In this document: in pieces, positions 29,410 through 61,201 of the stretch
Layout: the number at the start of each line of letters is the position of its first letter
How positions within the stretch are numbered: the stretch's first letter is position 1
Virus record (IMG/VR): IMGVR_UViG_3300035698_035366
Location: 232,120 to 296,119 of that record
Strand: one strand, 5' to 3'
DNA: 64,000 bases
Notes under the pieces: model-generated
Database searches by the model: none
Told to the model about the DNA's origin: nothing
Seen by the model: only the letters and a program-made list of their open reading frames with translations
Translations under genes and position numbers: made by a program

Positions 29410-30519
29410 ATGCGTATTGGAGAAATCGTAACGGTAGTTGTTTTTGTGTTTTTCATGTGTATCTCATATGGAGCAAACGCAACTGTAATCGGACAGAGCG
29501 AAGGCTTGTCTTTTATCAAAGCCGCCAATAACGCTCGCAGCGGGACGACAATGGATTTCCGCCAGCTTCAGAATTTTTTTAGCCCGACACAGGGAAACGA
29601 TAACCAGATTTTGAGCCGCACCGAAGCTCTTCTGGCGGAACTTGATGACGATGACAGCATCAAGCGGATATCGGTGATCGCAACCTTAATGCTTGAATCA
29701 GGAAAGGTTTATGAAGCCAACATTACAAACGGCTATCAGCTTTCCGTTGATAGCACGGGTTGGGATTTTGGTCCCAACGGTTCGCCTGTTCATAAGGATT
29801 TCCGTAAAGTAACTGAACATGATGTGGTATCTAGCGGATACGCTGTAAGCGATAACGATCTCGTTGACGGTCTTTCTGGAGTTCGAAATTTCTCAGATCG
29901 CGCAATCAACGGTGTTTATACTGTAACAGTCGTGTTTACTGGTCGGGATACGAAATTCGATACATTTGAAATTAATGGGTCTAACGTGATCGTTCGAAAC
30001 GTTAGTGAGATATCTAACCGTTTGGATATGACGAAACCAGGAGATGAGAAACTGCACAAGTCAATTGCAATTCGAACTTGGACAGTTGTAACTGAAAATC
30101 AGCTTAATGTTGCTTTCCCGAAGTTTCCTGAAAATTCCGTATTGTCGGCAATCATTATTACTCCAGTCAACATGCTACAGGTAATTGACCGTCGAGTTGA
30201 GGATTTGATCGACTCTCGCAAGCCGTTCGTGTACAATGCTGGTGGGTTTGGATCACGTAATGGATTTGATTATGGCATATCCCGATATTTTGCATACTCT
30301 AAGGATGGGTTCATCTCTACCCGAGGCCATGGTGGTTGCTGTAGTATCCCAGGCGATGATGGGCCATACGACGTACCGGTGTTTGTTCCTGGCGGAGACG
30401 GTGACCCAACCGATGTTCCAGGTATTACCATTCCAGGTACCGTTCCGGAACCCGGTGCGCTTGCACTATTCGGAATCGGCATTATTGGATTATTAATTAC
30501 TCGTCGTAGGAAAAAATAA
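29410..30519 (+). CDS. Secreted PEP-CTERM protein
   Basis: N-terminal signal peptide; C-terminal VPEPGALALFGIGIIGLLITRRRKK. Confidence 0.9.
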   Translation: MRIGEIVTVVVFVFFMCISYGANATVIGQSEGLSFIKAANNARSGTTMDFRQLQNFFSPTQGNDNQILSRTEALLAELDDDDSIKRISVIATLMLESGKVYEANITNGYQLSVDSTGWDFGPNGSPVHKDFRKVTEHDVVSSGYAVSDNDLVDGLSGVRNFSDRAINGVYTVTVVFTGRDTKFDTFEINGSNVIVRNVSEISNRLDMTKPGDEKLHKSIAIRTWTVVTENQLNVAFPKFPENSVLSAIIITPVNMLQVIDRRVEDLIDSRKPFVYNAGGFGSRNGFDYGISRYFAYSKDGFISTRGHGGCCSIPGDDGPYDVPVFVPGGDGDPTDVPGITIPGTVPEPGALALFGIGIIGLLITRRRKK

Positions 30520-46125: not shown

Positions 46126-46815
46126 TTAATATTTCCAATTATTAATTCTGTCAAGCAATACACTATACGACATATTACTATTATCATTTTTTCTTTTATT
46201 ATCTAAATGAATCATTAATTTGCAATTGGCAGGATGTGCAAGATTTTTTGGATTGTAATCGTTTTTAAATCCTTCCGAAATTGATATTATATGATCACGT
46301 GAAACCCCATTGATATTTTTAGGAAGGTTACTTCTCTTTTGTCCTGGACAAGTATACCATCCATGTTTTTCAATTAATGATAAATTGAAATAATCAGGGA
46401 AATCGAAAACATTAAATTTAAAACGTGATAACTCGTAATATTTTTCTTTTTCTGTTTTAATATAAGGAGACTGTTGTCTCCTGCCACCGCCTGGTCCAAT
46501 GGAACAATATATCTTTCCAGTAATATCGCATTTAATAAAATCGACTTTTCTAAACGGAAAAATTGTTTTTTCTGGGCCACTTTTTAATCGGGGTATTAAA
46601 TTTGTAACTGTAGCCGAGCACGAATGAGAACAATATTTATTTCTTCTTTTTTCATATACCAGTGGTATATTACAATTATTACAAAATTTTGGTTTAGTAT
46701 TATATTTTTCTACACGTGATAATTTTAATTGATTGTTTCGATGTGTTATTTGACAAGACAGGGAACAAAATTTTGGATTTTTTGTCAATTCGTTACAATT
46801 AAGGCACTTTTTCAT
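46126..46815 (-). mobile_element. HNH-type homing endonuclease with N-terminal Cys motifs
   Basis: CLNC..KFCSLSC and CNNC..KYCSHSC; SRDHIISI...HPANC..M.H..N..K; antisense insertion within the tRNA region. Confidence 0.8.
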
Positions 46816-46848
46816 TTGCTTTTCCATGGTCGTTGTGTTATTATAAAC

Positions 46849-46928
46849 TATAAATAATGGAGCGGGACAGCCCCTCTCCATGGTGGGTTTTTGTTGTTAG
46901 AGCAACAAATTACCGCCAATATTATTTA
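46849..46928. promoter_or_regulatory. Structured leader of the HNH gene (motif shared with the GIY-YIG gene)
   Basis: tataaata..gcgggacagccc-ctctccatggt-gggt..ttgttg/caacaa-attaccgc..tattta. Confidence 0.7.
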
Positions 46929-46944
46929 GTATAAATATTAATAT

Positions 46945-47018
46945 GCGAGTGTCGTCCAGTGATAGGGCCTTAGATTTCCAATCTAAAGACGAGGGTTTGA
47001 TTCCCTCCACCCGCTCCA
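46945..47018 (+). tRNA. tRNA-Gly(TCC)
   Basis: ttaga-ttTCCaa-tctaa; U73-CCA. Confidence 0.88.
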
Positions 47019-47235
47019 ACTTTTAGTATAGGATAAAATGTCCAAACTTAAAATATATCCCACCATACAAGAACAATTAGATTTATTGCTAGAAAATTAT
47101 CAAACAGCCAAAACTAAAAAAAATGCTGACCGTTGTTTTAGAGAATATCAAGAATTTTCTACATTTGTCGATGATTGTTATTTGGGAAGTGGCATAAAAC
47201 CTCCACATTCTCCAAAATAAAAGGTTAATCAAAAA

Positions 47236-47700
47236 ATGATTATATCAAAACCACCTAAATACCTAAAAAATACAAAGGGTAAGAGTATTTTTCTTGCTGG
47301 ATCCATCGAGATGGGCAAAGCAATTGATTGGCAATCTAAAATCCAAAAAGCCTTAAAAGATTATAATGTTACCATCTTCAATCCGCGGCGTGATGATTGG
47401 GATAGTTCATGGGAACAGTCAATTGATAATAAAGAATTTAAGACCCAAGTAACATGGGAATTGGATCATATTGACAAGGCCGACATTGTCGTTGTATATT
47501 TTGACAAAGATACACAATCACCAATTACTTTATTAGAATTGGGCCTCGGTGCTGCCAAGTATCCAGAAAAATTTATTGTTTGTTGCCCAGATGGGTTCTG
47601 GAGAAAAGGCAATGTTGATATTGTCTGTGAACGTTATGCCGTGCGACAAGTTGATTCGACCGAAGAATTGATACAGGTATTGGAAATCTTAATTCAATAA
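47236..47700 (+). CDS. Nucleoside 2-deoxyribosyltransferase-like protein
   Basis: IFLAGSI..G.A.DWQ, FNPRRDDWD, QV.WEL, SPITLLELG. Confidence 0.9.
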   Translation: MIISKPPKYLKNTKGKSIFLAGSIEMGKAIDWQSKIQKALKDYNVTIFNPRRDDWDSSWEQSIDNKEFKTQVTWELDHIDKADIVVVYFDKDTQSPITLLELGLGAAKYPEKFIVCCPDGFWRKGNVDIVCERYAVRQVDSTEELIQVLEILIQ

Positions 47701-47756
47701 CTTGATTACACGGATAAATAAAATGGTACTATTACTATTTTAACCGAGGATCAAAT

Positions 47757-48965
47757 ATGAAATTTAGAAATTTGGTGTTTATCACCGCATTAATTGCATT
47801 TATTGCACCAGCGGGCGCTCAACCACATAATCCTGATACCACAACATCAATCGAAACCATTGATGAATCTTCAAAAGATTATCAACAGCGTATCTTGTTC
47901 AATTACATACTTGATTATATCCAAAAAAATCATTACAAAAAAGCCACAACCGAGGAATTGGTTCAAGCAGCTATTCAAGGTATGATGCGATCTCTTGACG
48001 CTCATTCGTCATATACCGCTCCAAAGGATGCAGAAAAACAACGAAATGATTTACGCGGTGAAATATCTGGTATCGGCGCTACTTTAACAATTGATAAAGA
48101 ACGTGGAAATAGTCTTACTATTGTTGACGTTCTACCTGGAGGACCAGCAGACAAAGCTGGTATAAAAGCCGGTGACATAATTGATGAAGTGGATGGTCAT
48201 CCTACTAGTTTAGTTGATCTTCAGGGAGCAATTGAAAAAATCACAGGACCAGTTGGCACAGAGGTTAAATTAAAAATTATTCATAAAGGTAAAAAGGAAT
48301 GGTTTACGCTTACAAGAGCAGTTATTAAAAAGCCAATTGTTCGGTTTGAAATATTACAAGATGATATTGCATTTGTACGTTTAGAGCAATTTACACCAAA
48401 TGCAAGTGAACAGATTCGTAAAGCATGGAAAAATATGACAGCTATTACTCCAGCAACGAATATAAAGGGGATTATCTTAGACCTTCGATATAACCCAGGC
48501 GGTTTACTTGATCAAGCAGCAACCATCGTTGATATGTTTTCTTCCCATGGAACAGCGGTAATAGTTAAGGATGGAAACGGTGTTGAGACAGAACGATTTG
48601 ATGTTAGTAAGGAAGTGTTCTTCCCAGAAAATATACCATTAGTTATTCTTATTAATCGTTATTCGGCCTCGGCCTCAGAAATTGTTTCCGGCAGTTTAAA
48701 ACAAATGGGACGAGCATTTCTTATTGGAGAAAAGACTTATGGAAAGGGATCAGTACAAACAGTTTCACCAGTATATAATGGTGGGTTGTTAAGATTAACC
48801 ATGCAGCATTATTTTACGCATAATGATACTAGCCCACACGATGTGGGAATTGAGCCCAACTTGGCAATTATTAACGATGTTAAAAAAACAATCCGCCGCA
48901 CTGGAAAAATACCATTCGATGATCAATTACGGGCAGCTATTAATCATATCAATGCATCTAAATAA
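47757..48965 (+). CDS. S41 carboxy-terminal processing protease (CtpA-like)
   Basis: Signal peptide; LDAHS; PDZ (GIG, PADKAGIKAGD); DLRYNPGGLL; SASASEI; TYGKGSVQ. Confidence 0.95.
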   Translation: MKFRNLVFITALIAFIAPAGAQPHNPDTTTSIETIDESSKDYQQRILFNYILDYIQKNHYKKATTEELVQAAIQGMMRSLDAHSSYTAPKDAEKQRNDLRGEISGIGATLTIDKERGNSLTIVDVLPGGPADKAGIKAGDIIDEVDGHPTSLVDLQGAIEKITGPVGTEVKLKIIHKGKKEWFTLTRAVIKKPIVRFEILQDDIAFVRLEQFTPNASEQIRKAWKNMTAITPATNIKGIILDLRYNPGGLLDQAATIVDMFSSHGTAVIVKDGNGVETERFDVSKEVFFPENIPLVILINRYSASASEIVSGSLKQMGRAFLIGEKTYGKGSVQTVSPVYNGGLLRLTMQHYFTHNDTSPHDVGIEPNLAIINDVKKTIRRTGKIPFDDQLRAAINHINASK

Positions 48966-49164
48966 TAGGCATAAGGAGTTAATATTATGAATGAACTTTC
49001 CACCGATGCGTTAAAAATCGAAATTAATGAAATTCAAGTTAAGACTGAAAAATTAATGAAGAAAGCCGACGATGATGGTATGACTGTACCAAAAATCATT
49101 ATGGATGGTCTTAAAGCTCAATATGCCTCTCTTAATGCTGAATTAGATTCTAGGAGATAACACG

Positions 49165-49632
49165 GTGGTCGGCAACCCACAAAATATGCGTAAGTTTGTT
49201 AATTTATTGGAAAATAAGAAACAGATCAAAGAAGATCAGGTTTCTCTTCGTGATCAAATGGTTGAACGGTTGAAAACAGCCGATAAGAATGATTTTTGGA
49301 GTATTGTTCATGCTATTGGTTGGGGATCAGAGACAACCGATTCCGATTTAATTAAGTCTGCATTACGTGAAGTTTTTACACCAACCCAAATCGAAAGATT
49401 GGATAATAAAGCTGTCGAGTTTAGAAAAGCTCTTCAAACTAGAATTTGGCAATATGAAAAAGAACATGGAATCGTCAATCTTTATGGTGTTGGCGACGAT
49501 GGGTTCTGGGACGTCACGGCTCATGTCGTTGGTTTGGGAAAAGATTTCTATAGCCAAGTTATGAAAGATCCTGGTAGCTATTCGGGAAGAGGGGCGGTTG
49601 AAAATTTTGAATATTCCTTTAGCAAATATTAA
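49165..49632 (+). CDS. Hypothetical protein
   Basis: FWSIV...GDDGFWDV.AHVVGLGKDFY. Confidence 0.6.
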   Translation: MVGNPQNMRKFVNLLENKKQIKEDQVSLRDQMVERLKTADKNDFWSIVHAIGWGSETTDSDLIKSALREVFTPTQIERLDNKAVEFRKALQTRIWQYEKEHGIVNLYGVGDDGFWDVTAHVVGLGKDFYSQVMKDPGSYSGRGAVENFEYSFSKY

Positions 49633-49916
49633 AAACAACTTGACATTGCATATATAATATTGTTAAATTAAGTTTGGGATTTAAATTATGAATATCGCAT
49701 TTAATGAATTTTTCTTAGTAATAATTGTCGCAGTCTGGTTATTTACTGGACAACGAATATATCACATTGTTTCAAATTTCTTGCTGGCTTATCCATTGTT
49801 CATTTCTTCTTCAAGTGAGGAAATACCTGAACGCAATCGTAAAACCAAATAATAAGCATTCTATTGGGATTTTTCACTCCGCCATTGGTTATTGGTATTA
49901 TCTTTTGTTTATTTGA

Positions 49917-50285
49917 CTAATTTGCTGGATGAATAATCGTATTTTTCAAAGCATTTCGGCCAAGGATAAATGGATAGGTCATATTTGATCTATCAGCCAA
50001 GGAAACTTTGATATTCTTTATGATACCATTTACGCTGACTTTCATACGAACAATATAACTTTCTCTGGAACCATTTGCATTTCTAATCGTTTTTGTTCCT
50101 ACCAACGGGAAAGATAATTCAGTACCATTGTGATCAAAGGTAACTATTTCGTTTTTAATCTTGATGTTGTCAGCATGGATTGAAGACGTAGTCGCGCCTG
50201 TATCTATTCTAGCATCCAATTTACCGATTTTTGGTATCTTAACAACTGTTTTATATCCGAAGATTTCAATCGTTTTCAGAGACAT
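49917..50285 (-). CDS. RimK-associated retropepsin-like (putative Zn/Asp) protease
   Basis: ARIDTGATTSSIHA; SLADRSNMTYPFILGR. Confidence 0.9.
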   Translation of the reverse strand: MSLKTIEIFGYKTVVKIPKIGKLDARIDTGATTSSIHADNIKIKNEIVTFDHNGTELSFPLVGTKTIRNANGSRESYIVRMKVSVNGIIKNIKVSLADRSNMTYPFILGRNALKNTIIHPAN

Positions 50286-50936
50286 TTACTTGTTCTTCTG
50301 AATCTTCATCTTGTAATGATTCTTTATTTTCATCTAATGTTGGATCTGATTTTCTATTTGGATCCATTTCCGCGTCGTTTTCAGCTGTCAAATCAGCTAT
50401 TTGCTTGATTGGCGCATTAGTTTGCCATTCAGCTATAACTTCTTTCCATCTCATATTACAATACTCATTATTAAACGTATACTATTTATACCCATTATTG
50501 TTGACAAGAAGTCAAATCGTGTTATAATAATATTATAAACAACTTATAAGGTGATTTAAATGTCTACAATATTTAAAGGTTTAGCGTGGGTTTGGTTAAT
50601 TATCGTTACGCTTATCCTGATGACATTTGTTATTGACACCAATGAACAAAGTTATATTGGGGTAGCGGTTGTGTGGATGATATTCAATATCCCGACTGTT
50701 ATCACATATGGCTTTGGTGCGGTTTTGAAAAGAATCTAAAAACATATAAATCTGTATTGTGTTTTGGTTAAATATAGTATAATATACAAAGTAGCCAATA
50801 CATGATAGTAAATTAGTGGTTTAATACATAAAAGCGATAAATTTTCGTAAATAAATCAAGGTGTTATAAATGCTATTGTGTGAGAGATGCGTGTTGCTAC
50901 ACAACTAGCATATTGTTAACTATTAAGGGGATTATA

Positions 50937-51551
50937 ATGCCATTAGATCCAGGAACTGAAGAAGAATTAACCAACGCTTATCGCAAAATGATGATCCGCA
51001 CCGACAAGATGTATAATCACCCAGGGGATCGATCATACAGAGTTTATAATTTCTCTTTGCGTGGAAATGCCATATTTAATTATGCTGTGCCTCCATCTGC
51101 CGGATGTCATTATCCTGATGCCGAAAAGCGTCAAATATCTGAAGATCATTATATTGAGCAGTTCGATAAGAAAAATAGTAATTTCTATGCAAATCTTGAA
51201 CAAGATGTTTTAAAGAATGGTTTTCGTAATCCAATCTTAATTACGCGCGGCTGGGCTCCAGATAGTGCAAAAAAGCGAATTGATCAGGGATTTCCTGATA
51301 TGGATTATGAAAATACCATGTTTTGTTGCACATTCGGGGGAAGCCGTCTCTGGGTTGCAACAAAGCATAAAATGCTTATTCCGTGTATTGTGGTTGATTA
51401 TACCAATGGTCCATTAATATCTTCTAGAATTGACTATGTCGGTGATTTATATCGTTTATTTAATGATATGCCTGGTCCAATTATGTTCAATGATGATTCA
51501 TTGCGCATCACACCACCCAAATTTTCTCCAACGAATTATCCACTAGCATAA
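50937..51551 (+). CDS. ParB/Srx-like domain protein
   Basis: VLKNGFRNPILI...GGSRLWVA; paralog of 28951. Confidence 0.65.
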   Translation: MPLDPGTEEELTNAYRKMMIRTDKMYNHPGDRSYRVYNFSLRGNAIFNYAVPPSAGCHYPDAEKRQISEDHYIEQFDKKNSNFYANLEQDVLKNGFRNPILITRGWAPDSAKKRIDQGFPDMDYENTMFCCTFGGSRLWVATKHKMLIPCIVVDYTNGPLISSRIDYVGDLYRLFNDMPGPIMFNDDSLRITPPKFSPTNYPLA

Positions 51552-51579
51552 TTATCTCGGTTCAACACTTAAATACTGG

Positions 51580-52275
51580 ATGAAAAGAATAATGTATGAA
51601 CTAGTAGAAATCAAGCGATCGCATAATATTTTGTGTGCATTTATGAAACAGGATCCAATTCATCCTCTTCATGGTGCTGCAAATCTTAGTCACAGGTTTT
51701 CTGCATCACATCGCAATTATGCATATGTTAATGAGAATAATGATCCGGTAATGATTTGTTGCATCAAACTATCCCATAAACCAATTGGCAAAATGGATGA
51801 TATTTTTAATACCGTCGACGATTATAATGACAAGGACGCCAAAATTAGAAATGTCCTAACATTTTATAGTATATTTAGGACAAAGGTTGAAAGTGTAGAT
51901 ATTGGAAAAGATTTGGGTTTATCGTTAATGATGGATGTAACAAAATTGATTCACAGCGAATTTGATGAAATCAAGGTTATAAGAACACTAAGTCCGATAC
52001 CCACATTATCTGAACATTGCGCAAACCTCGTTGGAGAAGAAGCTGTTAGCAATTATATAAAAAGCAAACGAGATCCTGTTGCTAAATTCCATCTGCGTAA
52101 TAAGGCGAAAATGTCGGGAGTTATATTTAATGCAGATTGCAGCAAACTACGCCAGGAACAAAGTTATGGGTGGATGGTAGCATATGATTATTCTGATTGT
52201 TCATTATTTAAAAAAGATGAAGAAGTTGCTGAAGAACTCAAGGAAGTAATACCAAGTAAAGTAGAAGGTAAGTAA
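51580..52275 (+). CDS. Malonyl-CoA decarboxylase-like (catalytic GNAT domain only)
   Basis: DPIHP, TFYSI, TLSPIP, DPVAKFHLRN.A, AD.S....QSYG.MV.Y.Y. Confidence 0.8.
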   Translation: MKRIMYELVEIKRSHNILCAFMKQDPIHPLHGAANLSHRFSASHRNYAYVNENNDPVMICCIKLSHKPIGKMDDIFNTVDDYNDKDAKIRNVLTFYSIFRTKVESVDIGKDLGLSLMMDVTKLIHSEFDEIKVIRTLSPIPTLSEHCANLVGEEAVSNYIKSKRDPVAKFHLRNKAKMSGVIFNADCSKLRQEQSYGWMVAYDYSDCSLFKKDEEVAEELKEVIPSKVEGK

Positions 52276-52336
52276 TATAGACATCCAAGTAATAATCCTT
52301 TATTATTGTATTTTTACTAATAAAGGATTAATAAAA

Positions 52337-53314
52337 ATGTCCAATTACAAATATATTGTTTATTTCGCTGGTCCCATAACAGGCCTCTCTTACGGTTCTG
52401 CTACAGACTGGAGAGATTATGCTAAGTCCAAATTAGACGCAAGTATTGTTGGAATGAGTCCATTGCGTGGTAAGTCATATCTAAGTCAAATTGAAAATAT
52501 TCAAAACACACATGAAGATATCGCATTAAGTTGCGCAAAGGGAATTACCGCCCGGGACTTCAATGATTGCAAACGCGCCGATATGGTAATTGCTAATTTT
52601 GTTGAATCCAACATTCAAGATGAATTCGCAAAACAACATGGTTATGCCGGCATGGCAGATCTACTCGATGAAGCATTCATTCTTAATAATACCCTTCCCA
52701 ATACGCTCAACGAAGAAAAGTTACGCAATCTTCCATACGGTATTGTTTATATCAATGCTGATATTTGGGGAAAGTTGAGACAAAAAGCGGCAGATATTTT
52801 ACGGGTAAACACAATGGCTTGGGCCCGTCTCCGCCTTCCATTTAAAGATGATATAGCAATCGATCAAGTGACACTTGTTAACACATGGGTTGAAAACTTT
52901 ATTATATGCATTGAAGAAAAAGTTAAAATGGATAAACTAATGTCGATTTCTGGTCACGGTTTTAAGACAGATGACTTTGATACCAGTAGAGAACTATGGA
53001 TTAGACATGATTCATGGTGTTCATACGCGACACGAGTTTTGTCAAATTGGAGCGAATTTTGCAAGTTATATTCGTTAGAATCATATTTTTCTATCGCCAA
53101 GAAACAGGCATTAAACAATGATAAACAGGGATTAGTGGAATTTTTCAATGGTCTGTTTGAATTACTGTTGATTAACATGGCATTATGGAAAGTTAGAGAA
53201 AATTGGTGTCCAAAGCCTTCACCGCAGGATTATTCAATTTCAAGCTTCCACGATGACATGGCTGCAGAAGTAGCCAAACGATTTCTTAATGAACGAGATA
53301 AAGATGATTATTAA
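52337..53314 (+). CDS. N-terminal nucleoside-deoxyribosyltransferase-like region fused to an unknown domain
   Basis: VYFAGPITG...DWR...SPLRGK...RD..D....D.VIANF. Confidence 0.65.
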   Translation: MSNYKYIVYFAGPITGLSYGSATDWRDYAKSKLDASIVGMSPLRGKSYLSQIENIQNTHEDIALSCAKGITARDFNDCKRADMVIANFVESNIQDEFAKQHGYAGMADLLDEAFILNNTLPNTLNEEKLRNLPYGIVYINADIWGKLRQKAADILRVNTMAWARLRLPFKDDIAIDQVTLVNTWVENFIICIEEKVKMDKLMSISGHGFKTDDFDTSRELWIRHDSWCSYATRVLSNWSEFCKLYSLESYFSIAKKQALNNDKQGLVEFFNGLFELLLINMALWKVRENWCPKPSPQDYSISSFHDDMAAEVAKRFLNERDKDDY

Positions 53315-54107
53315 GCTTGACATTTAATTTAGATATGTTATCATTAGTTATTGAAATTATAGCAAATGGAATGAGAATATGTCTCTACTGAAGCGCAAAT
53401 TGGTTATAAAGGCCTGCAGAGTATGGGCTAAGACTGATAATCGAACATTCAGATTACAAATGCGCCCCATTGCCGAAATGGCGCGAGGATTTGTTATCGT
53501 TGAATCAATCAACACCCTCGAATTTGGCATTCCCGGAGATGAGCTACTTCGAGAAGAAATTGATAATATTCTGAAGAATAACGCCCTTGACATTCGGAAT
53601 GGAACGTTGACGATTGATATTATCAAAGGCTAAACCACCAGCAAATAATGTAATTATTGATAGAAAGAATTATTATGAACCCCTCCGCAGAATGGCTACA
53701 AGGTCGGAATTATCTCGCAACTTTTTACGGTGAGCGATTCGCTGATGCCTCGATAGCTTCTGCAAAAGTACAGATGCTGAAAAATAACGCAAACTTTAAG
53801 CGCATGGATGACCTCCGATGGAAATCGGTTCATTTCAAAAGCGGGATGATCGGTCGCCTGGTTGCTAAGATCGCGTATTATTTCCTCAATGTGTGTTATC
53901 CATATCGTTTGTACGAAGAAGAACAAATCGCCCTCGCTGAGCGCATGATCCGAATCGGTGAGGCCATTGTTTTTGTTACCCCTCCCAATAGTTCTTGCAT
54001 GTTTCCAAGCAACTGGTATCAAGCTAAACACCGTTCCAAAGGTTGACAAGCTTCAAACCTATGCTATAATAGTGGAACAAGCAAACAACTTACATGGAGA
54101 TCGAAAA

Positions 54108-54404
54108 ATGGTAAAGCATGATTTTAAGGTTGGTGATGGTGTGTCCTACAGCGCAGGAAGCGATCGTTATCCCGGTACCGTGATTCGAGTTACGAATACT
54201 CGGATTTTTGTTCAGGACGACAAATATGAATGCACAAGCCCCGCAAGCGCATACGGCGCAGATGATGCCGTTTTCAAATTCACGCCCAACACTGAAGGCG
54301 GCGTCCGGATGTACAGCGTGAAGAATAACGGTCGAATTAGCGGCAAGGGTGGTTATGGCGGCATTGGCCATGGTCGGCGCTATTACCAGGATCCAAGTTT
54401 TTAA
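54108..54404 (+). CDS. Hypothetical early protein (SH3-like)
   Basis: VGDG.....SDRYPGTVI...GRRYYQDPSF; promoter module. Confidence 0.7.
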   Translation: MVKHDFKVGDGVSYSAGSDRYPGTVIRVTNTRIFVQDDKYECTSPASAYGADDAVFKFTPNTEGGVRMYSVKNNGRISGKGGYGGIGHGRRYYQDPSF

Positions 54405-54516
54405 GGTAGGAACAATCTCCTTTCAAACGGCGATTAGTAACGTCAGTTAAAAAGATTTCTTGACAGTGGCATGTTCCTACCGAGGGTGTGAGTGGCCCAA
54501 AGAAATCATTTACTAA
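54405..54516 (+). ncRNA. Candidate double-pseudoknot RNA
   Basis: ggtaggaaca/tgttcctacc; gatttct/agaaatc; ttagtaa/ttactaa. Confidence 0.55.
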
Positions 54517-54550
54517 ACACAGAACCCGGACAATCCGGGTTTTGTTGTGA
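54517..54550 (+). terminator. Terminator-like hairpin
   Basis: cagaacccgga-caa-tccgggttttg. Confidence 0.65.
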
Positions 54551-55203
54551 ATAGTGGTTGACACCCAGACAAGTGTGTTATATTATATTGTTGAATAATA
54601 ATTGGAGCATGTAATGAAGATTAATGTTATCAAAAAAGAAATACATCGCCTAAACGGAATTATGTCTTTAGCGAAATTGATCGAACGGCCGCAAGAACGT
54701 ATTCAATATTCAGGAAAAACTAATCGGTTATTGAATGTTACGGATACCGATAATATCCTGGGAGACGCTGTACAAAAATTTGCAATCTTTTTTGTTAACG
54801 ATGTGGGGATACGATTCCAAACAGTCTTATCAAAAAATAGGTTTATTCGAAACGACGTAGTTCTTGCTTCGGTTCGAAAAGCTGATATACCAGTTTATCA
54901 AAAACTAGCCCAGATCAAAATTGACCCAAATACCGTTATCGAAGGAAAACTCTATATTTCACCAGAGCTTGTTCGATTTAACGATTTTGAATTAAACATG
55001 AGTTCATTCCAAAAAGCTACGAAGTCGAGATACGCACCATACGATGTCGCCGGAGCCTTCCAGAACTCTTATGGATGGTCTTGGAATATTGTTATGGTTC
55101 CCGCAATTAAAGAGTGGCTTGAAAAGAATAACATTGAACTTTAGGGGTTGACATCAACATTTATTATGTTATACTTTACAAAATTATAACTATGGAGATC
55201 TAG

Positions 55204-57576
55204 ATGCGCCTGAGCAATAATATTGAAAACGTAGAGACCACTGGTGTTAGTGACCAGGTAAATTTCTCAATTACCGCTAGTGCGAAAGCCTTCCAGATTC
55301 TTTCGGATGGACTTTATTCTGATAAGATTCGAGCAATTATTCGTGAGCTGGCATGCAATGCACATGATGCTCATGTTGCCGCTGGATGCCCAGATCGCAA
55401 ATTCGATGTACAGTTCCCAACGGCGATGGAACCTGAATTCGTTATTCGGGATTACGGAATTGGGTTGAGTTATGATGACGTAATGCATCTGTACACCACA
55501 TATTTTGACAGCACAAAAACCCAGTCAAATGATTTCACCGGCGCACTTGGTCTTGGCTCAAAGAGTCCATTCAGTTACACCAAATCCTTTACCGTCATCA
55601 GCTATCATGGTGGTAAGAAGATGACGTTTACGTCGTTTATTGGTGAGAATGGCACGCCGCAATGTGCTCATATGTTCACCGAGCCAAGCACGGAAGAAGT
55701 TGGTCTTGAAGTCCGCTTCGGTGTTAATGATAGCGACTTTTATCAATTCGAAAATCGAGCCCAGCGCGTTTTCCGCTTTTTCAATAATGTTCCGAATATT
55801 ACTGGGATAGAATTTATCCAAGAGGAACAGACCATTATCGCCAGCGGTGAAGGCTGGCGGATTATCCGAAATGGTCGGCACCATAATGGTCGTGTTTTTG
55901 TTGTTCAAGGAAATGTTGGTTATCCCGTTAACGCAGATAGTATCAAGTTTGCAGACAATGAAACACCAATCCACAAGTTCCTGTCTCTTTCCAATGCCAC
56001 TGTTGAAATTGATTTCCCAATCGGTGAGCTCCAGTTTGCTGCTAGTCGCGAAGAACTTGGGTATGATGACGGGACACAGAAAAATCTCAAGGATCGTACC
56101 CGTGAAATTATGGCGGAAATCGCTGCAATGGTTAGCGATGATATTAAGGACGCCAAGACGCTTTGGGAAGCCCATATCAAACTTCATGATATTACTGAAA
56201 ATTATGGTCAATCATTGCTTGACTCATTGTCGGATGACTTTGCTCCAACCTGGCAAGGTCGACCGGTTCATAAAGAGAAATTAATGGTTGACTTGGATGA
56301 ATTTTCAGTAAGCCGTGGATATACTAAGTGGGGTGGCGGGAAATTCGACGAAGATGAAAACACTTTGGACTTGATGGTTAGCAAGTTTATCGAACCGTCA
56401 GAAGGTATTAATTGGAAAAAGATCAACGATGATCGTACATATGGTCGCGGCGCATATACAACACACATTTTTGACCGAACAGGATCCAAAATTACCATCC
56501 GTCCGGCATCACGTGTAACAATCATCGTTGATGATGTTCGCAAGCGCGGCATTTACAGCCGTATCAATAATGCGCTGCAAGATGCTCAATGGCGGAAGGC
56601 GAATAATGTACAGAGGCAAACCCTTGCGCTGTTTGAATTCTCAAACGACAATGATCAAGAAGCACTTCTAAACGAACTTGGAAATCCACCGGTTATCAAG
56701 GTTAGTGAACTACCTGCAAAGGTTGTTGGAAATAGCCGCGGCGATCATAATATCTTTCAATGCTCGTTCAAAGGACATAATGTTCGTGACCGTTGGACCC
56801 CAGAAACAGAGATTGGTCTAGAAGATGGTGGCATTTATGTGGAATTAAAGGCATTTATTCCGTATAAAGCAAATAGGGACAAATGGGACAATTCATTGTT
56901 TCGTAATATTATTAATGACGCAGTAGCATTGGGACTTCTCAAAGATGTATCTGATGTTAAGGGTTTCCGTGTTGCCCAGGTTAAAGAATACGAATTGGAT
57001 AAAAACCCAGATTGGATTGAATTTGGTGATTTCATGCGGGCTGAGATTTTGAAGAAATTGAAATGGACGCGCCTAGGTAAAAAGACGGTCCAGTCTTCTT
57101 CGAATCGGTTCGGCAATCGAGAGTATAAAATTGATAGCTTAAATGCAAAAAACAAGAATTGGGATCTTCTTGATAAGGAAACTGATCTCTGGAAGTTTAT
57201 TGAAAAAATACGCGATGTTAACCGAGACGAAATTAAACTTCGAGTACCAAAGTCTTTTGAAAAATATAACAAAGCCAATAATAACCGTTATAACGTAACA
57301 TGGGATATCAAGCTTGTTGAGATGGCTCGCATTATGCATATTAATATTCACGACGAGTTTGTTCTTGAACAGGATAATTTGAGCAAACAATACGATGAAA
57401 TTGCAACCAAATATCCAATGGTTTGTGCAATTGAACTAGATAGCTATGAACATAAACGAGCCGATCTATCCAACCCCAAACCCGTGATATCACAAGAGCC
57501 TGGCAACTATCGAACAGACATCAATGATGTTATGGCATGGCAATTGTGGGATGCAGTTGTTAATATCAAAGATTGA
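55204..57576 (+). CDS. rIIA: RIIA lysis-inhibition / exclusion-protection protein (GHKL domain)
   Basis: AFQILSDGLYSDKIRAIIRELACNA.DAH; IRDYGIGLS; SNDFTGALGLGSKSPFSY. Confidence 0.93.
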   Translation: MRLSNNIENVETTGVSDQVNFSITASAKAFQILSDGLYSDKIRAIIRELACNAHDAHVAAGCPDRKFDVQFPTAMEPEFVIRDYGIGLSYDDVMHLYTTYFDSTKTQSNDFTGALGLGSKSPFSYTKSFTVISYHGGKKMTFTSFIGENGTPQCAHMFTEPSTEEVGLEVRFGVNDSDFYQFENRAQRVFRFFNNVPNITGIEFIQEEQTIIASGEGWRIIRNGRHHNGRVFVVQGNVGYPVNADSIKFADNETPIHKFLSLSNATVEIDFPIGELQFAASREELGYDDGTQKNLKDRTREIMAEIAAMVSDDIKDAKTLWEAHIKLHDITENYGQSLLDSLSDDFAPTWQGRPVHKEKLMVDLDEFSVSRGYTKWGGGKFDEDENTLDLMVSKFIEPSEGINWKKINDDRTYGRGAYTTHIFDRTGSKITIRPASRVTIIVDDVRKRGIYSRINNALQDAQWRKANNVQRQTLALFEFSNDNDQEALLNELGNPPVIKVSELPAKVVGNSRGDHNIFQCSFKGHNVRDRWTPETEIGLEDGGIYVELKAFIPYKANRDKWDNSLFRNIINDAVALGLLKDVSDVKGFRVAQVKEYELDKNPDWIEFGDFMRAEILKKLKWTRLGKKTVQSSSNRFGNREYKIDSLNAKNKNWDLLDKETDLWKFIEKIRDVNRDEIKLRVPKSFEKYNKANNNRYNVTWDIKLVEMARIMHINIHDEFVLEQDNLSKQYDEIATKYPMVCAIELDSYEHKRADLSNPKPVISQEPGNYRTDINDVMAWQLWDAVVNIKD

Positions 57577-57605
57577 CAGTCCTGAATAACGTGTTATAAT
57601 ACATT

Positions 57606-58094
57606 ATGACTGAAACTTGGTATAAATCTTCGGGAACGATTGTTTATGATCCCCCGCGTCCGAAGCTTCGAAAGCGACCGGACCATTGGGTTGTAATCAA
57701 TGCTGATTATGAAATCGCCCGTTATTTCCGCTATTGGGTGGATAAGGAAGTCTTGAACCCTCTTGGTTTTGAGAAGGGTGGTCTCGCTGAGCCCAGCTGG
57801 GGAGCCCATATTAGTATCATTCGCGGCCTTAACGATATACGCAATTGTCCGTTTGATTGGAAGACTATCTGGAAGCGTTATCACGGACAGAAAGTTGAGT
57901 TTGAATATAGCAATAAGGTCCGTTATACTGGCGATACTACTGGGCACGATCGTCCGGGAGATTATTGGTTCGTTGAGGTTCGTTGCCCGTTAGCGGAACA
58001 GATACGCGACGAATTCAAGTTGATCCGTGATTGGTCGCTACATCTTACGATTGGTCGGACTTGGCCTGATCGCGTTGTAAAGCTCAAGAAGTAG
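57606..58094 (+). CDS. 2H phosphoesterase
   Basis: Two HxS/T motifs: AHISII and LHLTIG. Confidence 0.8.
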   Translation: MTETWYKSSGTIVYDPPRPKLRKRPDHWVVINADYEIARYFRYWVDKEVLNPLGFEKGGLAEPSWGAHISIIRGLNDIRNCPFDWKTIWKRYHGQKVEFEYSNKVRYTGDTTGHDRPGDYWFVEVRCPLAEQIRDEFKLIRDWSLHLTIGRTWPDRVVKLKK

Positions 58095-58797
58095 TATCGA
58101 GGTGCTTCCAGGTTCGTCCAGCAATGATGTCCTGGATAGTGCCTTGAGCTACGCCATATTCCTTACACCAAGCATTTAATATTTTACCACGGTGACCTAT
58201 CGGAGTTGTTTTATATGTTTGAGCAGAAGCCTTAATAATGCGGACAGCTTGCTCTGTCATCTTGGCAAGATAGCAATTTTCACCTTGGACTTTCTTTCTA
58301 CCTTCATAATATTTGGCAGTTTGTTTTTTGCCATACATTGGATTGCCAGATCCTTTTCTTTGATCACTTATTTCTTTCTTTCTTTCTTTGGAAAATTTAC
58401 AACCTTGTCTATTTTGCAAAGCGTTACCTTTCATTCGTTTCCGGAATTCGTCGCGTCTTTTTTCAGCCCCGTCAAGAAGCCAAGGATTAGGAGGATTGAC
58501 TCCTAAGGCAATATTCATCAAACAACCTTGAGGTTCGATTTCACGCCTTCCAAAGAATAATATCAATTCTTCCTCTATCCTGATCGCCTCATTTTCTTCT
58601 AATCCTGTATGGACTAATCGAATTATTGGTTGCTGCCCAGAGCGGAGTATCTTTTGGAGTTTTCGATATTTACGTTCGTTAATAGTTGTATCAACAGTTT
58701 CGTTTAGATGAGCCTGCCAGCGTTTATTACATCCTTTTCCGATGTAGAATGGTTTAAGATCTGTCGGATCTATATAGACATATACATAATATTTCAT
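58084..58797 (-). mobile_element. GIY-YIG homing endonuclease (NUMOD3-type repeats)
   Basis: YYVYVYIDP....FYIGKG...R...H; GSGNPMYGKK; inserted antisense between rIIA and rIIB. Confidence 0.9.
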
Positions 58798-58822
58798 ATT
58801 GATTCTCCTTGGTTTTTCGTGT

Positions 58823-58902
58823 TATAAATAACCAAGTAACGGGACAACCCGCCTCCTTGGTGGGCCTTGATTGCTCAAACAATCAATTACCGTTACTATT
58901 TA
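58823..58902. promoter_or_regulatory. Structured leader of the GIY-YIG gene (motif shared with the HNH gene)
   Basis: tataaata..gtaacgggacaaccc-gcctccttggt-gggc..ttgattg/caatcaa-ttaccgttac-tattta. Confidence 0.7.
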
Positions 58903-59100
58903 GCAGTTTTTTTGACAGGATCGATCCTTTTCTTTCGAAGTAATGGATCGCGCTCAGCCTTTAACTCTTCGAGCTCTTTCATATCACGCTTCTTCTTGTG
59001 GTGGGCTATCTCTTTGTATCTCATACTCATATTTAGCTTGACAATCGCGTAGAATGTGTTATTATGCTATAATTGGATATAGTGAAAACGGGATAATTTG

Positions 59101-59469
59101 ATGAAAAAATTACTTTTAGCCGTTGTAATATTGGTAATGGCTGTGAATGTTTCTAAAGCTTCGGAATTAACGAATGAAGAAATAATTAAAATGAATGAAT
59201 ATTGCGCCACTGTTAGAAATAGCAAATATGAAATACTGCTAAAAATGTATGAAAAGAACAAGTTGAAACTGTCGAAGGGGAAGTGGAAAAACCCAAAACT
59301 ACAACAAATGCTTCTAGATCAAAATAACCAATTTATAGATAAACACCGCGCGCAAAATCGAAACACGAAAGATATTGATTGGTGGGCCTATATGAATCGA
59401 CGTTCTAAAGCGAGTAATTGGAAAAAAGACACCATGAAGTGTTATTATTTTTATCTTAAAATACAATAG
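59101..59469 (+). CDS. Secreted hypothetical protein
   Basis: Signal peptide MKKLLLAVVILVMAVNVSKA. Confidence 0.6.
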   Translation: MKKLLLAVVILVMAVNVSKASELTNEEIIKMNEYCATVRNSKYEILLKMYEKNKLKLSKGKWKNPKLQQMLLDQNNQFIDKHRAQNRNTKDIDWWAYMNRRSKASNWKKDTMKCYYFYLKIQ

Positions 59470-59569
59470 AGGACCGAAAGGTTAAGATTCGAAAATAAAT
59501 GTTGACAATAGCGTTTCAACGTGTTACCATTTATGTTAACTGTACTAAACTTTGATGGAGTAGAAACCA

Positions 59570-61201
59570 ATGAGCAAGCTTGATGCTGCAATCGCTGGTA
59601 GCGATTATATCACCGTGACAATCGATGGTGTGACACATTCACTCACCGAATCACACCCAAATTACGAAAAAGCTCGAGAAGCTCTAAAGATTCGGGATGC
59701 TGATCTGCTCTCGACCCTCGTTGATATTCCAAAATCCATTAATACGTTCAGTGGTGGTAAGGTCACCGTTGAAGGTGGTGTGATTATGTTTTCGGGGAAA
59801 GCCATTCATAACAGCCTAACACGGCGTATGATTGAGATGATGAAGGAAGGTTTTGACATCACATCTCTTGCCAATTTCTTGAAAAACATCCAGGGCAATC
59901 CAAGCTTCCGGGCAGTGAATGAACTTTATACGTTTTTGGAAGAGAACAAGCTTCCAATTACGGATGACGGGCATTTCCTAGCTTACAAGCGTGTTCGATC
60001 CAACTTCACAGATATCTTTACTGGAACATTTGATAATAGCCCAGGTAAGACGTGCGCGATGCCTCGTAACCAGGTCAACGAAGATAAGGACCAAACTTGC
60101 TCGGAAGGTCTACACTTCTGCTCAATCGAATACCTACCGCACTTTGGTTCGTATGGCGGAAATGACAACATCGTCATCGTTAAGATTAACCCAAGGGACG
60201 TTGTTTCGATTCCTTCCGATTACAACAATGCCAAGGGTCGAACTTGTCGCTATGTGGTAGTTGACCAATGGATGGGTTGGGAAGAGTTCGTCAAGGAACA
60301 GAAGGACTTCTTCGACAAGAGCGTAGTTAATGATTATACACCACCGTCCACCAAGGGCTCTGATGGTGAGACGCTAATGGACTTTGATCAAGCCGCTGAT
60401 CTCATTTGTGGTCATACACAGAACCCAGCTTCGTCTCTCCGTAAGCGTATCAATCGCGGAACCATTCGTACGGTAAATGGTCAGGTTGTTGTTGACGGCT
60501 TTTATACGCCACCAGTAACCATTGACGAAACACCTTCTAAGGTCGATATGACCGATGACGAAAAGAAGGATACTCGCGCCTGGAAGAATGGTTGGACTGC
60601 TGGCCGCGATGCAGCCTTAAATGATGTTTATTCACCAACGAGTGGTGTTGAAGCCCACCTAACAGACGAGCAGCGGCAAAATCCAGGACTTTACACAGAA
60701 GGATTTAGGGCCGGCTATGAAGGTATACAACCCATTGAGGTCATTGACGATGTCATTGATGCAAAGACCGGTGAAGTTAATTCCATTGAATGGCATCGGG
60801 GATTTTCCGAGGGAATTGTTATGGCTGATAAAGACATTGTCGATAATGATGTTTACGGTGATGGGTATGATGATATTGCTGGAGAACCTGGTGATAGAAA
60901 CGCTGGTTTTATTGTTGGTTATGATGAAGCATATGAGGCTTGGGTCAAGAGCGGAAAGGGTCGTCGAGCAGGCGCATCAAACAGTGAAGATTCAAAGCAT
61001 ACCGACCGTTCTTGGATCCAAGGAATCACTGACGGTATGAGTTCAGGAAAGATGGATAAAGTGTCTGGAAAAACGAAAGATGGTTGGCATAGGCCACCTG
61101 ATAATGTTTCACGCACGGATTATTACACTGAAGCATATACTCTTGCATATGAGCGAGTGTGGGACAATAGTGGGTGGAACTGGTTTGACGGCGACCGGTA
61201 A
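59570..61201 (+). CDS. rIIB: RIIB protein with a long repeat-containing C-terminal extension
   Basis: NPSFRAVNELY.FL, ITDDGHFLAYK, MPRNQV, CSEGLH, INPRDVVSIPSDYNNAKGRTCRY. Confidence 0.93.
   Translation: MSKLDAAIAGSDYITVTIDGVTHSLTESHPNYEKAREALKIRDADLLSTLVDIPKSINTFSGGKVTVEGGVIMFSGKAIHNSLTRRMIEMMKEGFDITSLANFLKNIQGNPSFRAVNELYTFLEENKLPITDDGHFLAYKRVRSNFTDIFTGTFDNSPGKTCAMPRNQVNEDKDQTCSEGLHFCSIEYLPHFGSYGGNDNIVIVKINPRDVVSIPSDYNNAKGRTCRYVVVDQWMGWEEFVKEQKDFFDKSVVNDYTPPSTKGSDGETLMDFDQAADLICGHTQNPASSLRKRINRGTIRTVNGQVVVDGFYTPPVTIDETPSKVDMTDDEKKDTRAWKNGWTAGRDAALNDVYSPTSGVEAHLTDEQRQNPGLYTEGFRAGYEGIQPIEVIDDVIDAKTGEVNSIEWHRGFSEGIVMADKDIVDNDVYGDGYDDIAGEPGDRNAGFIVGYDEAYEAWVKSGKGRRAGASNSEDSKHTDRSWIQGITDGMSSGKMDKVSGKTKDGWHRPPDNVSRTDYYTEAYTLAYERVWDNSGWNWFDGDR

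Follow-up and report, generated by a model that had tools for sequence, protein, structure and literature searches.

Two nuclease genes on the minus strand of the window, the 64,000-nt stretch of DNA analysed here (positions 232,120–296,119 of IMG/VR record IMGVR_UViG_3300035698_035366), are each preceded by the same small structured element. Gene A (46126–46815) encodes a protein of 229 aa, or 233 aa if translation starts at the ATG at 46827. Its N-terminal part has Cys-rich zinc fingers, and its C-terminal domain is HNH-like and shared with nuclease C, the gene beside a third copy of the element in this phage. The protein matched phrog_23051 (E=4e-35), and 250 homologues were found; D174-H175, N197, and N206 are invariant in the 24 homologues compared. 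The HNH assignment given in the earlier note is plausible from these invariant residues but was not confirmed by other means: no Pfam hit was obtained, a PDB profile search found only zinc fingers, and a Foldseek search with the AF2 model (pLDDT 89) gave nothing with E<1, the colicin E9 DNase hit having E=1.3. Gene B (58084–58797; 237 aa) encodes a GIY-YIG homing endonuclease with a NUMOD3 motif (PF22945, 3.1e-8; PF07460, 1.5e-5; both above their cut-offs) and is inserted antisense between rIIA/2H-phosphoesterase and rIIB.

The two elements fold on the + strand into a three-way junction. In element A (46862–46916), P1 is 46862–46865 paired with 46913–46916, J1/2 (GACAG) is 46866–46870, P2 is 46871–46887, P3 is 46890–46896 paired with 46903–46909, and J3/1 (UUA) is 46910–46912. 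In element B (58836–58896), P1 is 58836–58842 paired with 58890–58896, J1/2 (GACAA) is 58843–58847, P2 is 58848–58864, P3 is 58867–58873 paired with 58880–58886, and J3/1 (UUA) is 58887–58889. The fold z-scores of A and B were −4.75 and −3.98 on the + strand against −1.55 and −2.53 on the minus strand, and the MFE structure of B is the three-way junction itself. Covariance-model hits scored 85 bits for A and 94/85 bits for B. P1, P2, and P3 carry compensatory differences between the two copies, and the core pattern CGGGACA..ATTACCG occurs exactly twice in the window against 0 in 100 shuffles.

The P2 loop of each element repeats the translation initiation region (TIR) of the adjacent gene. The sequence tccatggt is at 46823–46830, where it reads ACCAUGGA on the mRNA of gene A, and again in the loop at 46877–46884. 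Similarly, ctccttggt is at 58805–58813, where it reads ACCAAGGAG on the mRNA of gene B and includes the Shine-Dalgarno sequence, and again in the loop at 58853–58861. This repeat was reached in only 18 (A) and 11 (B) of 20,000 shuffles of the RBS region. On the + strand, the late-type promoter-like motif TATAAATA reads into both elements (46849–46856 and 58823–58830), and the predicted +1 is G46862 in A and G58836 in B, the first base of P1 in each case, P1 of B being 7 bp long. In A the motif is preceded by a weak sigma-70-like TTGCTT-17-TATTAT at 46816–46844. On the other flank, TATTTA (46923–46928 and 58897–58902) reads TAAATA on the minus strand and is either a candidate face-to-face promoter for the nuclease mRNA or the 3' arm of an outer helix, P0; in B it is followed on the + strand by a U7 run at 58907–58913. 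The segments atggag (46857–46862) and aaccaag (58830–58836), complementary to both the loop and the RBS, are also present. Every coordinate that the earlier note gave for the two sites was confirmed.

A family of elements beside mobile nuclease genes

Strict sequence patterns found only the source phage, whereas relaxing GGTGGG to GGG revealed a wider family. Fourteen distinct members (A–N) were found in at least seven phage contigs, several over 190 kb, including three copies in the window phage (A, B, and C), three in a related 543-kb phage, and two in a related 195-kb phage. Thirteen of the 20 pairs of the junction carry compensatory changes. Every member lies 11–38 nt from the start of a divergently oriented gene. 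These genes, encoding products of 106–434 aa, are GIY-YIG, HNH or HNH-like, Vsr-like, or DUF723-type nucleases, or TnpB, including four decayed or split copies; TnpB is flanked by an IS1595 transposase. The element is not tied to the gene A nuclease family, since homologues with 50–57% identity in other T4-like phages sit antisense in tRNA arrays but lack it. A search of bacterial and archaeal genomes gave one chance hit in an L10 leader, with no P3, and a blastn search of GenBank phages found no cultured carrier.

The earlier note had held that a match to an Rfam family, or loss of the loop/RBS identity in homologues, would count against its reading, and neither was observed. At the Rfam 15 gathering threshold, the window gave only tRNAs. 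A permissive scan (E≤10) of both sites gave only chance-level partial hits, the best being SAM-II at 18.7 bits against a gathering score of 44 and outside the junction. tRNA-like and ribozyme readings were also rejected, because the 3–5-nt connectors do not fit tRNA or hammerhead geometry and no self-cleaving ribozyme family was among the permissive matches. In contrast, the loop/TIR identity holds over 6–10 nt in all 14 members, with 12 different sequences. The longest common substring averages 7.8 nt for cognate pairs against 4.2 nt for non-cognate pairs, and high values among the latter occur only between close relatives. The identity tracks substitutions and one indel: an A-to-T change between A and B, a 1-nt deletion at both sites in C, and a T-to-C change at both sites between D and E. 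In K the match covers the start codon itself. Member D keeps a perfect 9-nt match although its nuclease gene is a 40-codon remnant. Only A has an AUG in the loop in frame with the gene, and this is not conserved, which led us to reject a leader-peptide reading.

The several copies per genome, their position at the 5' border of unrelated accessory genes, and the end of homology at the start codon raise the possibility of a DNA-level mobile regulatory cassette like PeSL, a repeated module that would serve as a recombination point, supply promoters in both directions, and have no regulatory role as RNA. PeSLs are described as promoter/stem-loop composites that mediate modular shuffling (PMC4122927). 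We consider this reading very unlikely. PeSLs are simple terminator-like stem-loops with sigma-70 early promoters, whereas the flanking motifs here are TAAATA-type and the sigma-70-like match is weak (8 of 12 in A and D). The covariation at 13 pairs with an invariant junction implies selection on a folded strand, recombination does not explain a loop that tracks the RBS of each gene, and the partners are always nucleases or transposon genes, not accessory ORFs in general.

Another reading is that of a guide-like RNA serving the mobility or self-protection of the cassette, its loop recognizing DNA at the cassette border in the manner of bridge, omega, or seek RNAs. The programmable loop in a conserved scaffold next to mobile nuclease genes, one of them TnpB, and the position of the matched DNA segment, which abuts the constant TAAATA motif in F and J–N like a TAM or PAM, are in line with this idea. 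However, the partner proteins belong to at least five unrelated families, so that no common RNA-binding effector exists, the matched segment always coincides with the SD or start codon, which points to translation, and 6–10 nt in a hairpin loop is unlike known guides. This is the least likely of the readings considered.

Strand and mode of action

The earlier note proposed mainly a pseudoknotted leader on the nuclease mRNA, in which a cis anti-RBS segment pairs either with the RBS (off) or with the decoy loop (on), and/or an antisense sRNA from the + strand late promoter. Its interpretation was partly supported. It was right that the same three-way junction lies upstream of unrelated nuclease genes, copies the RBS in its P2 loop, is portable between nuclease families, and is more elaborate than the T4 RBS hairpins, and its secondary suggestion is the one that the family-wide evidence favors. 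The cis switch is not supported and seems unlikely. In A, B, and C a 5–7-nt segment just 5' of P1 on the + strand is indeed complementary to both copies, and RNAfold pairs it with part of the RBS in B. In addition, all neighbors of K, M, and N are on the nuclease strand, so that polycistronic minus-strand RNAs must contain the element as a leader, and the stems are equally valid on the minus strand. However, the anti-RBS segment is absent in the other 11 members, in which the 4–9 nt between TAAATA and P1 show no complementarity to the matched segment, and a systematic search found no third complementary segment at a consistent position on the minus strand. In A and C the segment is the same ATGGAG although their loops differ. 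The TIR is predicted to be mostly unpaired in the minus-strand leader, with a mean unpaired probability of 0.30–0.91, and at least 0.5 in 10 of the 14 members.

Two identical segments on one strand cannot pair with each other, whereas the loop on a + strand RNA is complementary to the RBS on the nuclease mRNA, and opposite-strand RNAs explain the match directly. The one internal mismatch (H: loop CUUCGAG, TIR CTCCGAG) becomes a U·G wobble only in the duplex of the + loop with the minus mRNA. In most members the matched segment lies in an 8–11-nt P2 loop and is predicted to be mostly unpaired in the + RNA (mean 0.42–0.85). The + strand folds better than the minus strand in 11 of the 14 members. 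NNTAAATA lies upstream on the + strand in 12 of the 14 members (C has TAAGTA and I has TATATA), and under the T4 spacing rule the predicted start falls 0–3 nt from the first base of P1 in all 14. TATTTA is conserved downstream in 14 of 14. On sequence evidence, the TAAATA-type motif behaves as a promoter elsewhere: in the window, as TATAAATA, it sits 7 nt before tRNA 5' ends (15531/15546 and 46930/46945), close to the 5 nt before P1, and is biased 14:3 to the + strand, and TAAATA also precedes unrelated genes in the 543-kb and 195-kb phages. In member M a strong bidirectional intrinsic terminator follows the element, which delimits a predicted + RNA of about 110 nt and would force the nuclease mRNA to start at the minus-strand TAAATA.

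Some observations weigh against an antisense RNA from the + strand. The G·U asymmetry in the stems, which favored the + strand with four copies, vanished with 14 (13 against 11), and both strands would fold equally well on that test; wobble at the edges of the loop/TIR match is confounded by base composition. In E the T-to-C change that keeps the loop/TIR match breaks a + strand A-U pair but keeps a minus-strand G·U pair. Eight to ten base pairs is a short target, and member D keeps its match although only a remnant of its nuclease gene is left. Whole-RNA duplex energies were only weakly better than for shuffled targets (fraction of shuffles at least as good, 0.006 for A and 0.08–0.14 for B–D), and the duplex-energy matrix was not discriminating because RNAduplex allows large interior loops. 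The phage is known only from metagenomes, and only DNA runs were found for it. Contigs of four salt-lake runs compared with 57000–60200 for an empty site or strain difference gave only short low-depth contigs and no joints.

In H, J, K, L, and N the flanks are complementary beyond the TAAATA core, suggesting an outer helix P0 (UAAAUAGA / UCUAUUUA) that can form only in read-through RNAs that do not start at these motifs. P0 has 8–10 perfect pairs in J, K, L, and N and about 9 in H, its flanks (GA/TC, GC/GC) are not part of the general promoter context in those phages, and the matched segment abuts its 3' arm directly in F and J–N. This raises the possibility of T4-style temporal control, in which P0 in early or middle read-through transcripts closes the junction against the SD and hinders initiation, whereas late transcripts, starting at the TAAATA within the 5' arm of P0, lack that arm and are translated. 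On this view the TAAATA on the opposite strand is only the pairing partner of the promoter. The same logic is established for I-TevI, segB, and mobE, and phage 25 seg43(25) has a stable hairpin at the foot of an unsequestered RBS (PMC2988022). However, this model does not explain the loop/TIR identity, the strongest signal. The SD itself is never inside P0, P0 is only the 6-bp core in A, B, C, D, E, and M, and in M a terminator precedes the minus-strand TAAATA, so that little read-through RNA can exist. We regard it as unlikely on its own, although it can coexist with an antisense RNA.

We presume, with no more than moderate confidence, that the element is a small RNA gene, or a 5' leader, read from the + strand as a face-to-face antisense RNA with a programmable loop. 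In this view, the TAAATA-type late-like promoter between the RBS and the element would start transcription at the first base of P1 and give a compact RNA whose conserved junction (GYGG-GACAG-CCC...GGG-UUUU-P3-AAUUA-CCRC) presents a large, variable P2 loop, complementary over 6–10 nt to the Shine-Dalgarno/start-codon region of the adjacent nuclease mRNA. Pairing there would block 30S binding and hold down translation of a potentially toxic selfish nuclease. The second TAAATA probably starts the nuclease mRNA, and the two RNAs would then also overlap face to face across the element, as in IS10 RNA-IN/RNA-OUT. The outward + promoter would in addition re-supply transcription to the phage genes downstream of the insertion: tRNA-Gly at A, the rIIB side at B, and thrS in relatives D and E. 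The analysis itself establishes the structure and its covariation, the association with nuclease genes, the cognate-specific loop/RBS match, and the positions of the promoter motifs, whereas the existence of both RNAs, their pairing, and the repressive effect are inferred.

The very strong conservation of the junction, which also weighs against this reading, is more than a plain antisense RNA needs. A more tentative possibility is that the junction is a dedicated, portable silencer scaffold, which phages or the selfish nucleases themselves would re-program by changing one loop, giving each nuclease gene in a genome its own orthogonal antisense regulator. The invariant junction would then be the docking site for a phage- or host-encoded RNA chaperone or RNase shared by all copies, and the whole would be a natural, modular, programmable translational repressor system for taming at least five unrelated families of mobile nucleases, TnpB included.

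Comparison with known systems

How phage genomes tolerate dozens of selfish nuclease genes is only partly understood, and the T4 answers are gene-specific hairpins and autorepression. The present family, a new structured-RNA family for databases, would be the first shared, portable RNA module found in front of GIY-YIG, HNH, Vsr-like, DUF723-type, and TnpB genes alike, with a loop re-written for each gene. It suggests a compact natural scaffold for programmable translational repression, and that such cassettes may bring an outward promoter restoring expression of the phage genes they interrupt, which bears on how homing endonucleases persist.

The T4-type RBS-sequestering hairpins with an embedded late promoter (I-TevI, I-TevII/III, segB, and Aeh1 mobE; PMC2988022) control homing endonuclease genes at translation, as the present element would, and have a late promoter motif in the 5' arm of a helix just upstream of the RBS, as the minus-strand TAAATA would be in the putative P0. 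Here, however, the RBS is not paired in the structure, which is a covarying three-way junction rather than a simple hairpin, is shared between nuclease families, and carries a loop copy of the RBS. The CfrI antisense RNA of cyanophage S-PM2 (Millard et al. 2010, as summarized in PMC12197685) is likewise associated with a free-standing homing endonuclease gene in a T4-like phage, but is described as a cis-antisense RNA linking psbA and the F-CphI gene and is not a conserved portable scaffold with a programmable loop. The PeSL cassettes of T4-like phages (PMC2839356, PMC4122927) are short, repeated, promoter-bearing structured motifs at the borders of variable genes and are portable between unrelated ORFs, but they are implicated in recombination and have no three-way junction, no loop/RBS match, and no exclusive link to nucleases.

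In the divergently encoded type I toxin-antitoxin pairs with limited complementarity (tisB/istR-1, zorO/orzO, and shoB/ohsC), the sRNA is transcribed away from the toxic gene from an adjacent promoter, carries a short stretch complementary to the 5' region of the mRNA, and does not overlap the coding region. Those targets are small hydrophobic membrane peptides and the pairing is about 18–20 nt, often at a standby site, whereas here the putative targets are nucleases of 100–430 aa and the match is 6–10 nt at the SD or AUG. A further comparison is the P1/P7 c4 antisense repressor RNA (cited in PMC12197685, ref. 46). c4 is a small structured RNA with short loop sequences complementary to the RBS region of a target outside the RNA gene, and loop and target covary between related phages, which gives specificity. 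It is, however, encoded on the same strand upstream of its target and processed from the same transcript, controls an antirepressor, and has an unrelated structure.

In IS10 RNA-OUT/RNA-IN and similar cis-antisense control of mobile-element genes (also P22 sar/ant and IS200 art200), a selfish element limits translation of its own DNA-cutting or transposase gene with a small, stable, structured antisense RNA, which comes from a promoter facing that of the gene and contacts the TIR with one of its loops. The complementarity of the putative + RNA to the TIR was found in 14 of 14 members of the present family. In those systems the antisense RNA physically overlaps the RBS. Here the overlap, if the minus-strand TAAATA is the mRNA promoter, would cover only the leader, and the RBS is matched by a separate copy in the P2 loop of a conserved three-way junction shared by at least five unrelated nuclease families.

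The two elements and their phage context

The 296-kb metagenomic phage contig IMGVR_UViG_3300035698_035366, of which the window is the last ~64 kb, represents a phage that is also assembled as the 363-kb Ga0222664_1000004 from salt-lake samples. The window carries 34 tRNA genes, rIIA/rIIB, and endonuclease VII, and megablast found no relative of it among GenBank phages. Almost all genes run on the + strand, including the 34 tRNA genes (12763-47018). Many of the tRNA genes are preceded by a composite promoter motif, TTGACA-17-TAnnAT immediately followed by TATAAATA, which ends 7 nt before the tRNA 5′ end (for example, 15531/15546 and 46930/46945). The window also encodes an aminoacyl-tRNA synthetase-like gene with a class I Glu/Gln-type catalytic domain (27663-28526), and another ORF (29410-30519) carries a C-terminal PEP-CTERM sorting motif (E=1.3e-6), which is unusual for a phage gene.

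Two nuclease genes lie antisense to their neighbours. Gene A (46126-46815) sits between two tRNA-Gly genes, and gene B (58084-58797) sits between rIIA/2H-phosphoesterase and rIIB. Gene B is a GIY-YIG plus NUMOD3 enzyme. Gene A has Cys-rich zinc fingers and a C-terminal domain with invariant D-H...N...N residues, although Pfam, a PDB profile search, and a fold search of a confident AF2 model did not confirm it as HNH. A 44-codon lysine-rich ORF on the minus strand (58896-59030) ends exactly at the TAG of CTAAATAG beside element B. It has no family match and is not conserved at a third copy of the element (copy C, described below), where only a 10-codon ORF in another frame is present.

The earlier note had described the same three-way junction in front of both genes, with a P2 loop repeating the ribosome-binding site (RBS) of the adjacent gene. 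This observation held, and every coordinate in it proved correct. The core CGGGACA-N-ATTACCG occurs twice in the window and never in shuffled sequences. Both copies fold into the same three-way junction, with compensatory differences in P1 and P3. The 8- and 9-nt loop/RBS repeats are rarely reached when the RBS region is shuffled (18 and 11 of 20,000 shuffles), and no Rfam family matches at any threshold.

The family and its partner genes

Searches with strict sequence patterns recovered only the source phage, plus the third copy (C) outside the window, which lies in front of a third nuclease. A metagenome scan added copy D from another phage. Relaxing the invariant-looking GGTGGG to GGG, followed by covariance-model filtering, gave ten more distinct members. 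These come from other phage contigs, including contigs of 359, 543, and 195 kb; the 543-kb contig carries three copies and the 195-kb contig two. No member was found in 185,579 bacterial and archaeal genomes, in which the one hit is a chance match in an L10 leader, and none was found by blastn in GenBank phages.

The consensus on the element strand begins with NNTAAATA and 4-9 nt, followed by G-Y-G-G (P1), GACAG, CCC-[variable loop]-GGG (P2), UUUU, P3 (7-9 bp), AAUUA, and C-C-R-C (P1), and it ends with 3-6 nt and UAUUUA. On the 14-member alignment, 90.8% of cells are paired. Thirteen of 20 pairs carry changes on both sides, none of 500 shuffles reaches this value, and slid controls collapse. 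This is a genuinely selected fold of one nucleic-acid strand. The invariant GGGACAGCCC (46864-46873 and 58841-58850 in the window, and present in all members) can also form its own 3-bp hairpin, GGG/CCC with an ACAG loop, which RNAfold prefers in A and C. This hairpin competes with P1 and P2, and it could be an alternative conformer once the P2 loop is engaged.

In all 14 members, an ORF starts on the opposite strand, 11-38 nt from the covariance-model match. Ten members have a recognisable or plausible intact partner. The partner of A has zinc fingers plus an HNH-like domain, that of B is GIY-YIG/NUMOD3, that of C is HNH-like, and that of E is a SegE-type GIY-YIG/NUMOD3 protein. The N-terminus of the G partner resembles GIY-YIG by eye, but it has no Pfam hit. 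The H partner has the same zinc-finger module as A, fused to a Vsr/DUF559-type nuclease, and the I partner shows a weak HNH match (E=0.006, below the Pfam cut-off). The partners of J and N are DUF4379/DUF723/DUF7487 proteins, and that of K is TnpB, with an IS1595 transposase next door. The other four members have decayed or split partners: a 40-codon remnant in D, a 52-codon fragment in F, a 67-codon fragment in L, and a split ORF in M, of which the second part carries NUMOD3.

Some of these loci have further features. In the 543-kb contig carrying K (L214:552-2887), the order is an IS1595-family DDE transposase, the element, and TnpB (OrfB_IS605 plus Cas12f-like TNB). The element is at the 5′ end of tnpB, whereas the usual omega RNA would be at the 3′ end. 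In H (L206:5728-5795), the loop-matched RBS serves a 10-codon upstream ORF. The Vsr-like nuclease ORF starts 13 nt after the stop of that ORF and has no Shine-Dalgarno sequence of its own, suggesting translational coupling, and a tRNA 3′ fragment follows the element. At the G locus (L203:1746-2114), ARAGORN calls a permuted tmRNA on the element strand that overlaps the 3′ end of nuclease G. The sequences just downstream of elements F and G are conserved and GC-rich, and the cassette may sit inside or beside a phage tmRNA-like gene.

Homology between copies stops at the start codon, and homologues of gene A in other T4-like phages lack the element. Such homologues (L197:940-1680 and L198:2380-2530, in two of these phage sequences) are also inserted antisense into tRNA arrays, and their start codons lie next to orphan tRNA 3′ fragments (T-arm plus acceptor). 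Back-to-back TATTTA/TAAATA motifs stand there in place of the three-way junction. The element is therefore a portable 5′ module and not part of any one nuclease lineage.

Cognate match between the P2 loop and the translation initiation region

In every member, the interior of P2 repeats, on the same strand, 6-10 nt of the translation initiation region (TIR) of the divergent gene. The matched segment is TCCATGGT in A, CTCCTTGGT in B, CTCCAGGT in C, TTCCTTGGT in D, TTCCTTGGC in E, ACTCCAAG in F and G, CTCTGACTGG in I, TTCACCGA in L, ACTCCTGA in M, and ACACCTGC in N. In K, the segment is CATCTGCT, which covers the start codon. In J, it is TTCCTG plus two wobble-compatible positions, and in H, the loop has CTTCGAG whereas the TIR has CTCCGAG. 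Cognate matches average 7.8 nt and non-cognate matches 4.2 nt, and the only long off-diagonal values are between close relatives.

The identity includes positions outside the Shine-Dalgarno core, a 1-nt deletion shared by both sites in C, and a T-to-C change shared by both sites between the orthologues D and E. In D (L140:381-503), the GIY-YIG gene is reduced to 40 codons, while the orthologous E copy (L204:1-468) is intact; the element and a perfect 9-nt loop/RBS match are kept in both, and the T-to-C change is present at both sites in E. Convergence of both sites on the host anti-Shine-Dalgarno sequence cannot explain these features, and neither can recombination over 8 nt. Selection for base pairing can. 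Our confidence that the structure and the loop/TIR coupling are real and selected is very high.

Candidate pairing partners and related systems

Two identical segments on one strand cannot pair with each other. The solution proposed in the earlier note was a third, cis-acting anti-RBS segment. That segment exists only in A, B, and C, and in A and C it is the same ATGGAG although their loops differ. A systematic search of the nuclease-strand RNA found no complementary segment at a consistent place, and the TIR is predicted to be mostly open. The interpretation in the earlier note was partly supported: its cis switch is not borne out across the family, whereas its secondary suggestion of an antisense RNA from the + strand is the reading that we favour.

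This alternative needs no third partner, because the loop on a + strand RNA would be the exact complement of the TIR on the minus-strand mRNA. Several features of the sequence support a + strand RNA. NNTAAATA lies directly upstream on the + strand in 12 of 14 members (C has TAAGTA and I has TATATA), and it is a perfect TATAAATA in A, B, D, E, and M. With the T4 spacing (+1 at the sixth base after the motif), the predicted RNA starts 0-3 nt from the first paired base of P1 in all 14 members; P1 is 7 bp where the spacer is 3 nt longer (B, D, and E) and 4 bp where it is shorter. In the window, the same motif sits 7 nt before the 5′ ends of tRNA genes (against 5 nt before P1), precedes ORFs, and is biased 14:3 to the + strand. 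TAAATA also precedes unrelated genes in the 543-kb and 195-kb phages. The + strand folds better in 11 of 14 members, although the stem G.U test does not discriminate between the strands with 14 members. The single internal mismatch, in H, is a U.G wobble only in the + loop/minus mRNA orientation. In M, a strong bidirectional intrinsic terminator (GGGCGGGA...UCCCGCCC; L207:1180-1215), flanked by an A-run and a U-run, follows the element and lies between the upstream 728-aa gene and the minus-strand TAAATA of the element, which delimits a predicted + RNA of about 110 nt.

A second TAAATA on the other flank, conserved in 14 of 14 members, would start the nuclease mRNA face to face with the + RNA. 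The two RNAs would then also overlap across about 65-75 nt, and the "decoy" copy of the RBS in the mRNA leader would be a geometric by-product of that arrangement rather than a selected feature. The fold and the loop/TIR coupling are established by the comparative analysis, whereas both transcripts, their pairing, and any repression are inferred from sequence alone, and we regard the antisense mechanism as about as likely as not. In H, J, K, L, and N, the flanks are complementary beyond the promoter core (TAAATAGA / TCTATTTA), with flanks that are not general promoter context. An outer helix P0 may therefore form in read-through RNAs. This recalls the T4 logic of a late promoter inside the inhibitory helix (PMC2988022), and it could act together with the antisense RNA.

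In A, B, G, H, and I, the neighbours run on the element strand, so the + promoter would also feed downstream phage genes. In D and E, the element is the 5′ leader of a thrS-like gene (L140:636-1051 and L204:598-1816, respectively), which was judged to be ThrRS-like only by eye from its translation. In K, M, and N, every neighbour is on the nuclease strand. The near-invariant junction is more than an antisense RNA needs, and it hints at a protein partner.

The element is not a T4-type RBS hairpin, not a PeSL (PMC4122927), and not an Rfam family. Antisense control as such has precedents; what is new here is a structured-RNA family, a conserved and portable scaffold with a gene-specific loop, attached to at least five unrelated families of mobile nucleases. 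Functionally, the closest precedents are IS10 RNA-OUT and similar cis-antisense controls, the sRNAs of divergent type I toxin-antitoxin pairs, the loop-programmed c4 RNA of P1/P7, and the CfrI antisense RNA next to a cyanophage homing endonuclease (PMC12197685).
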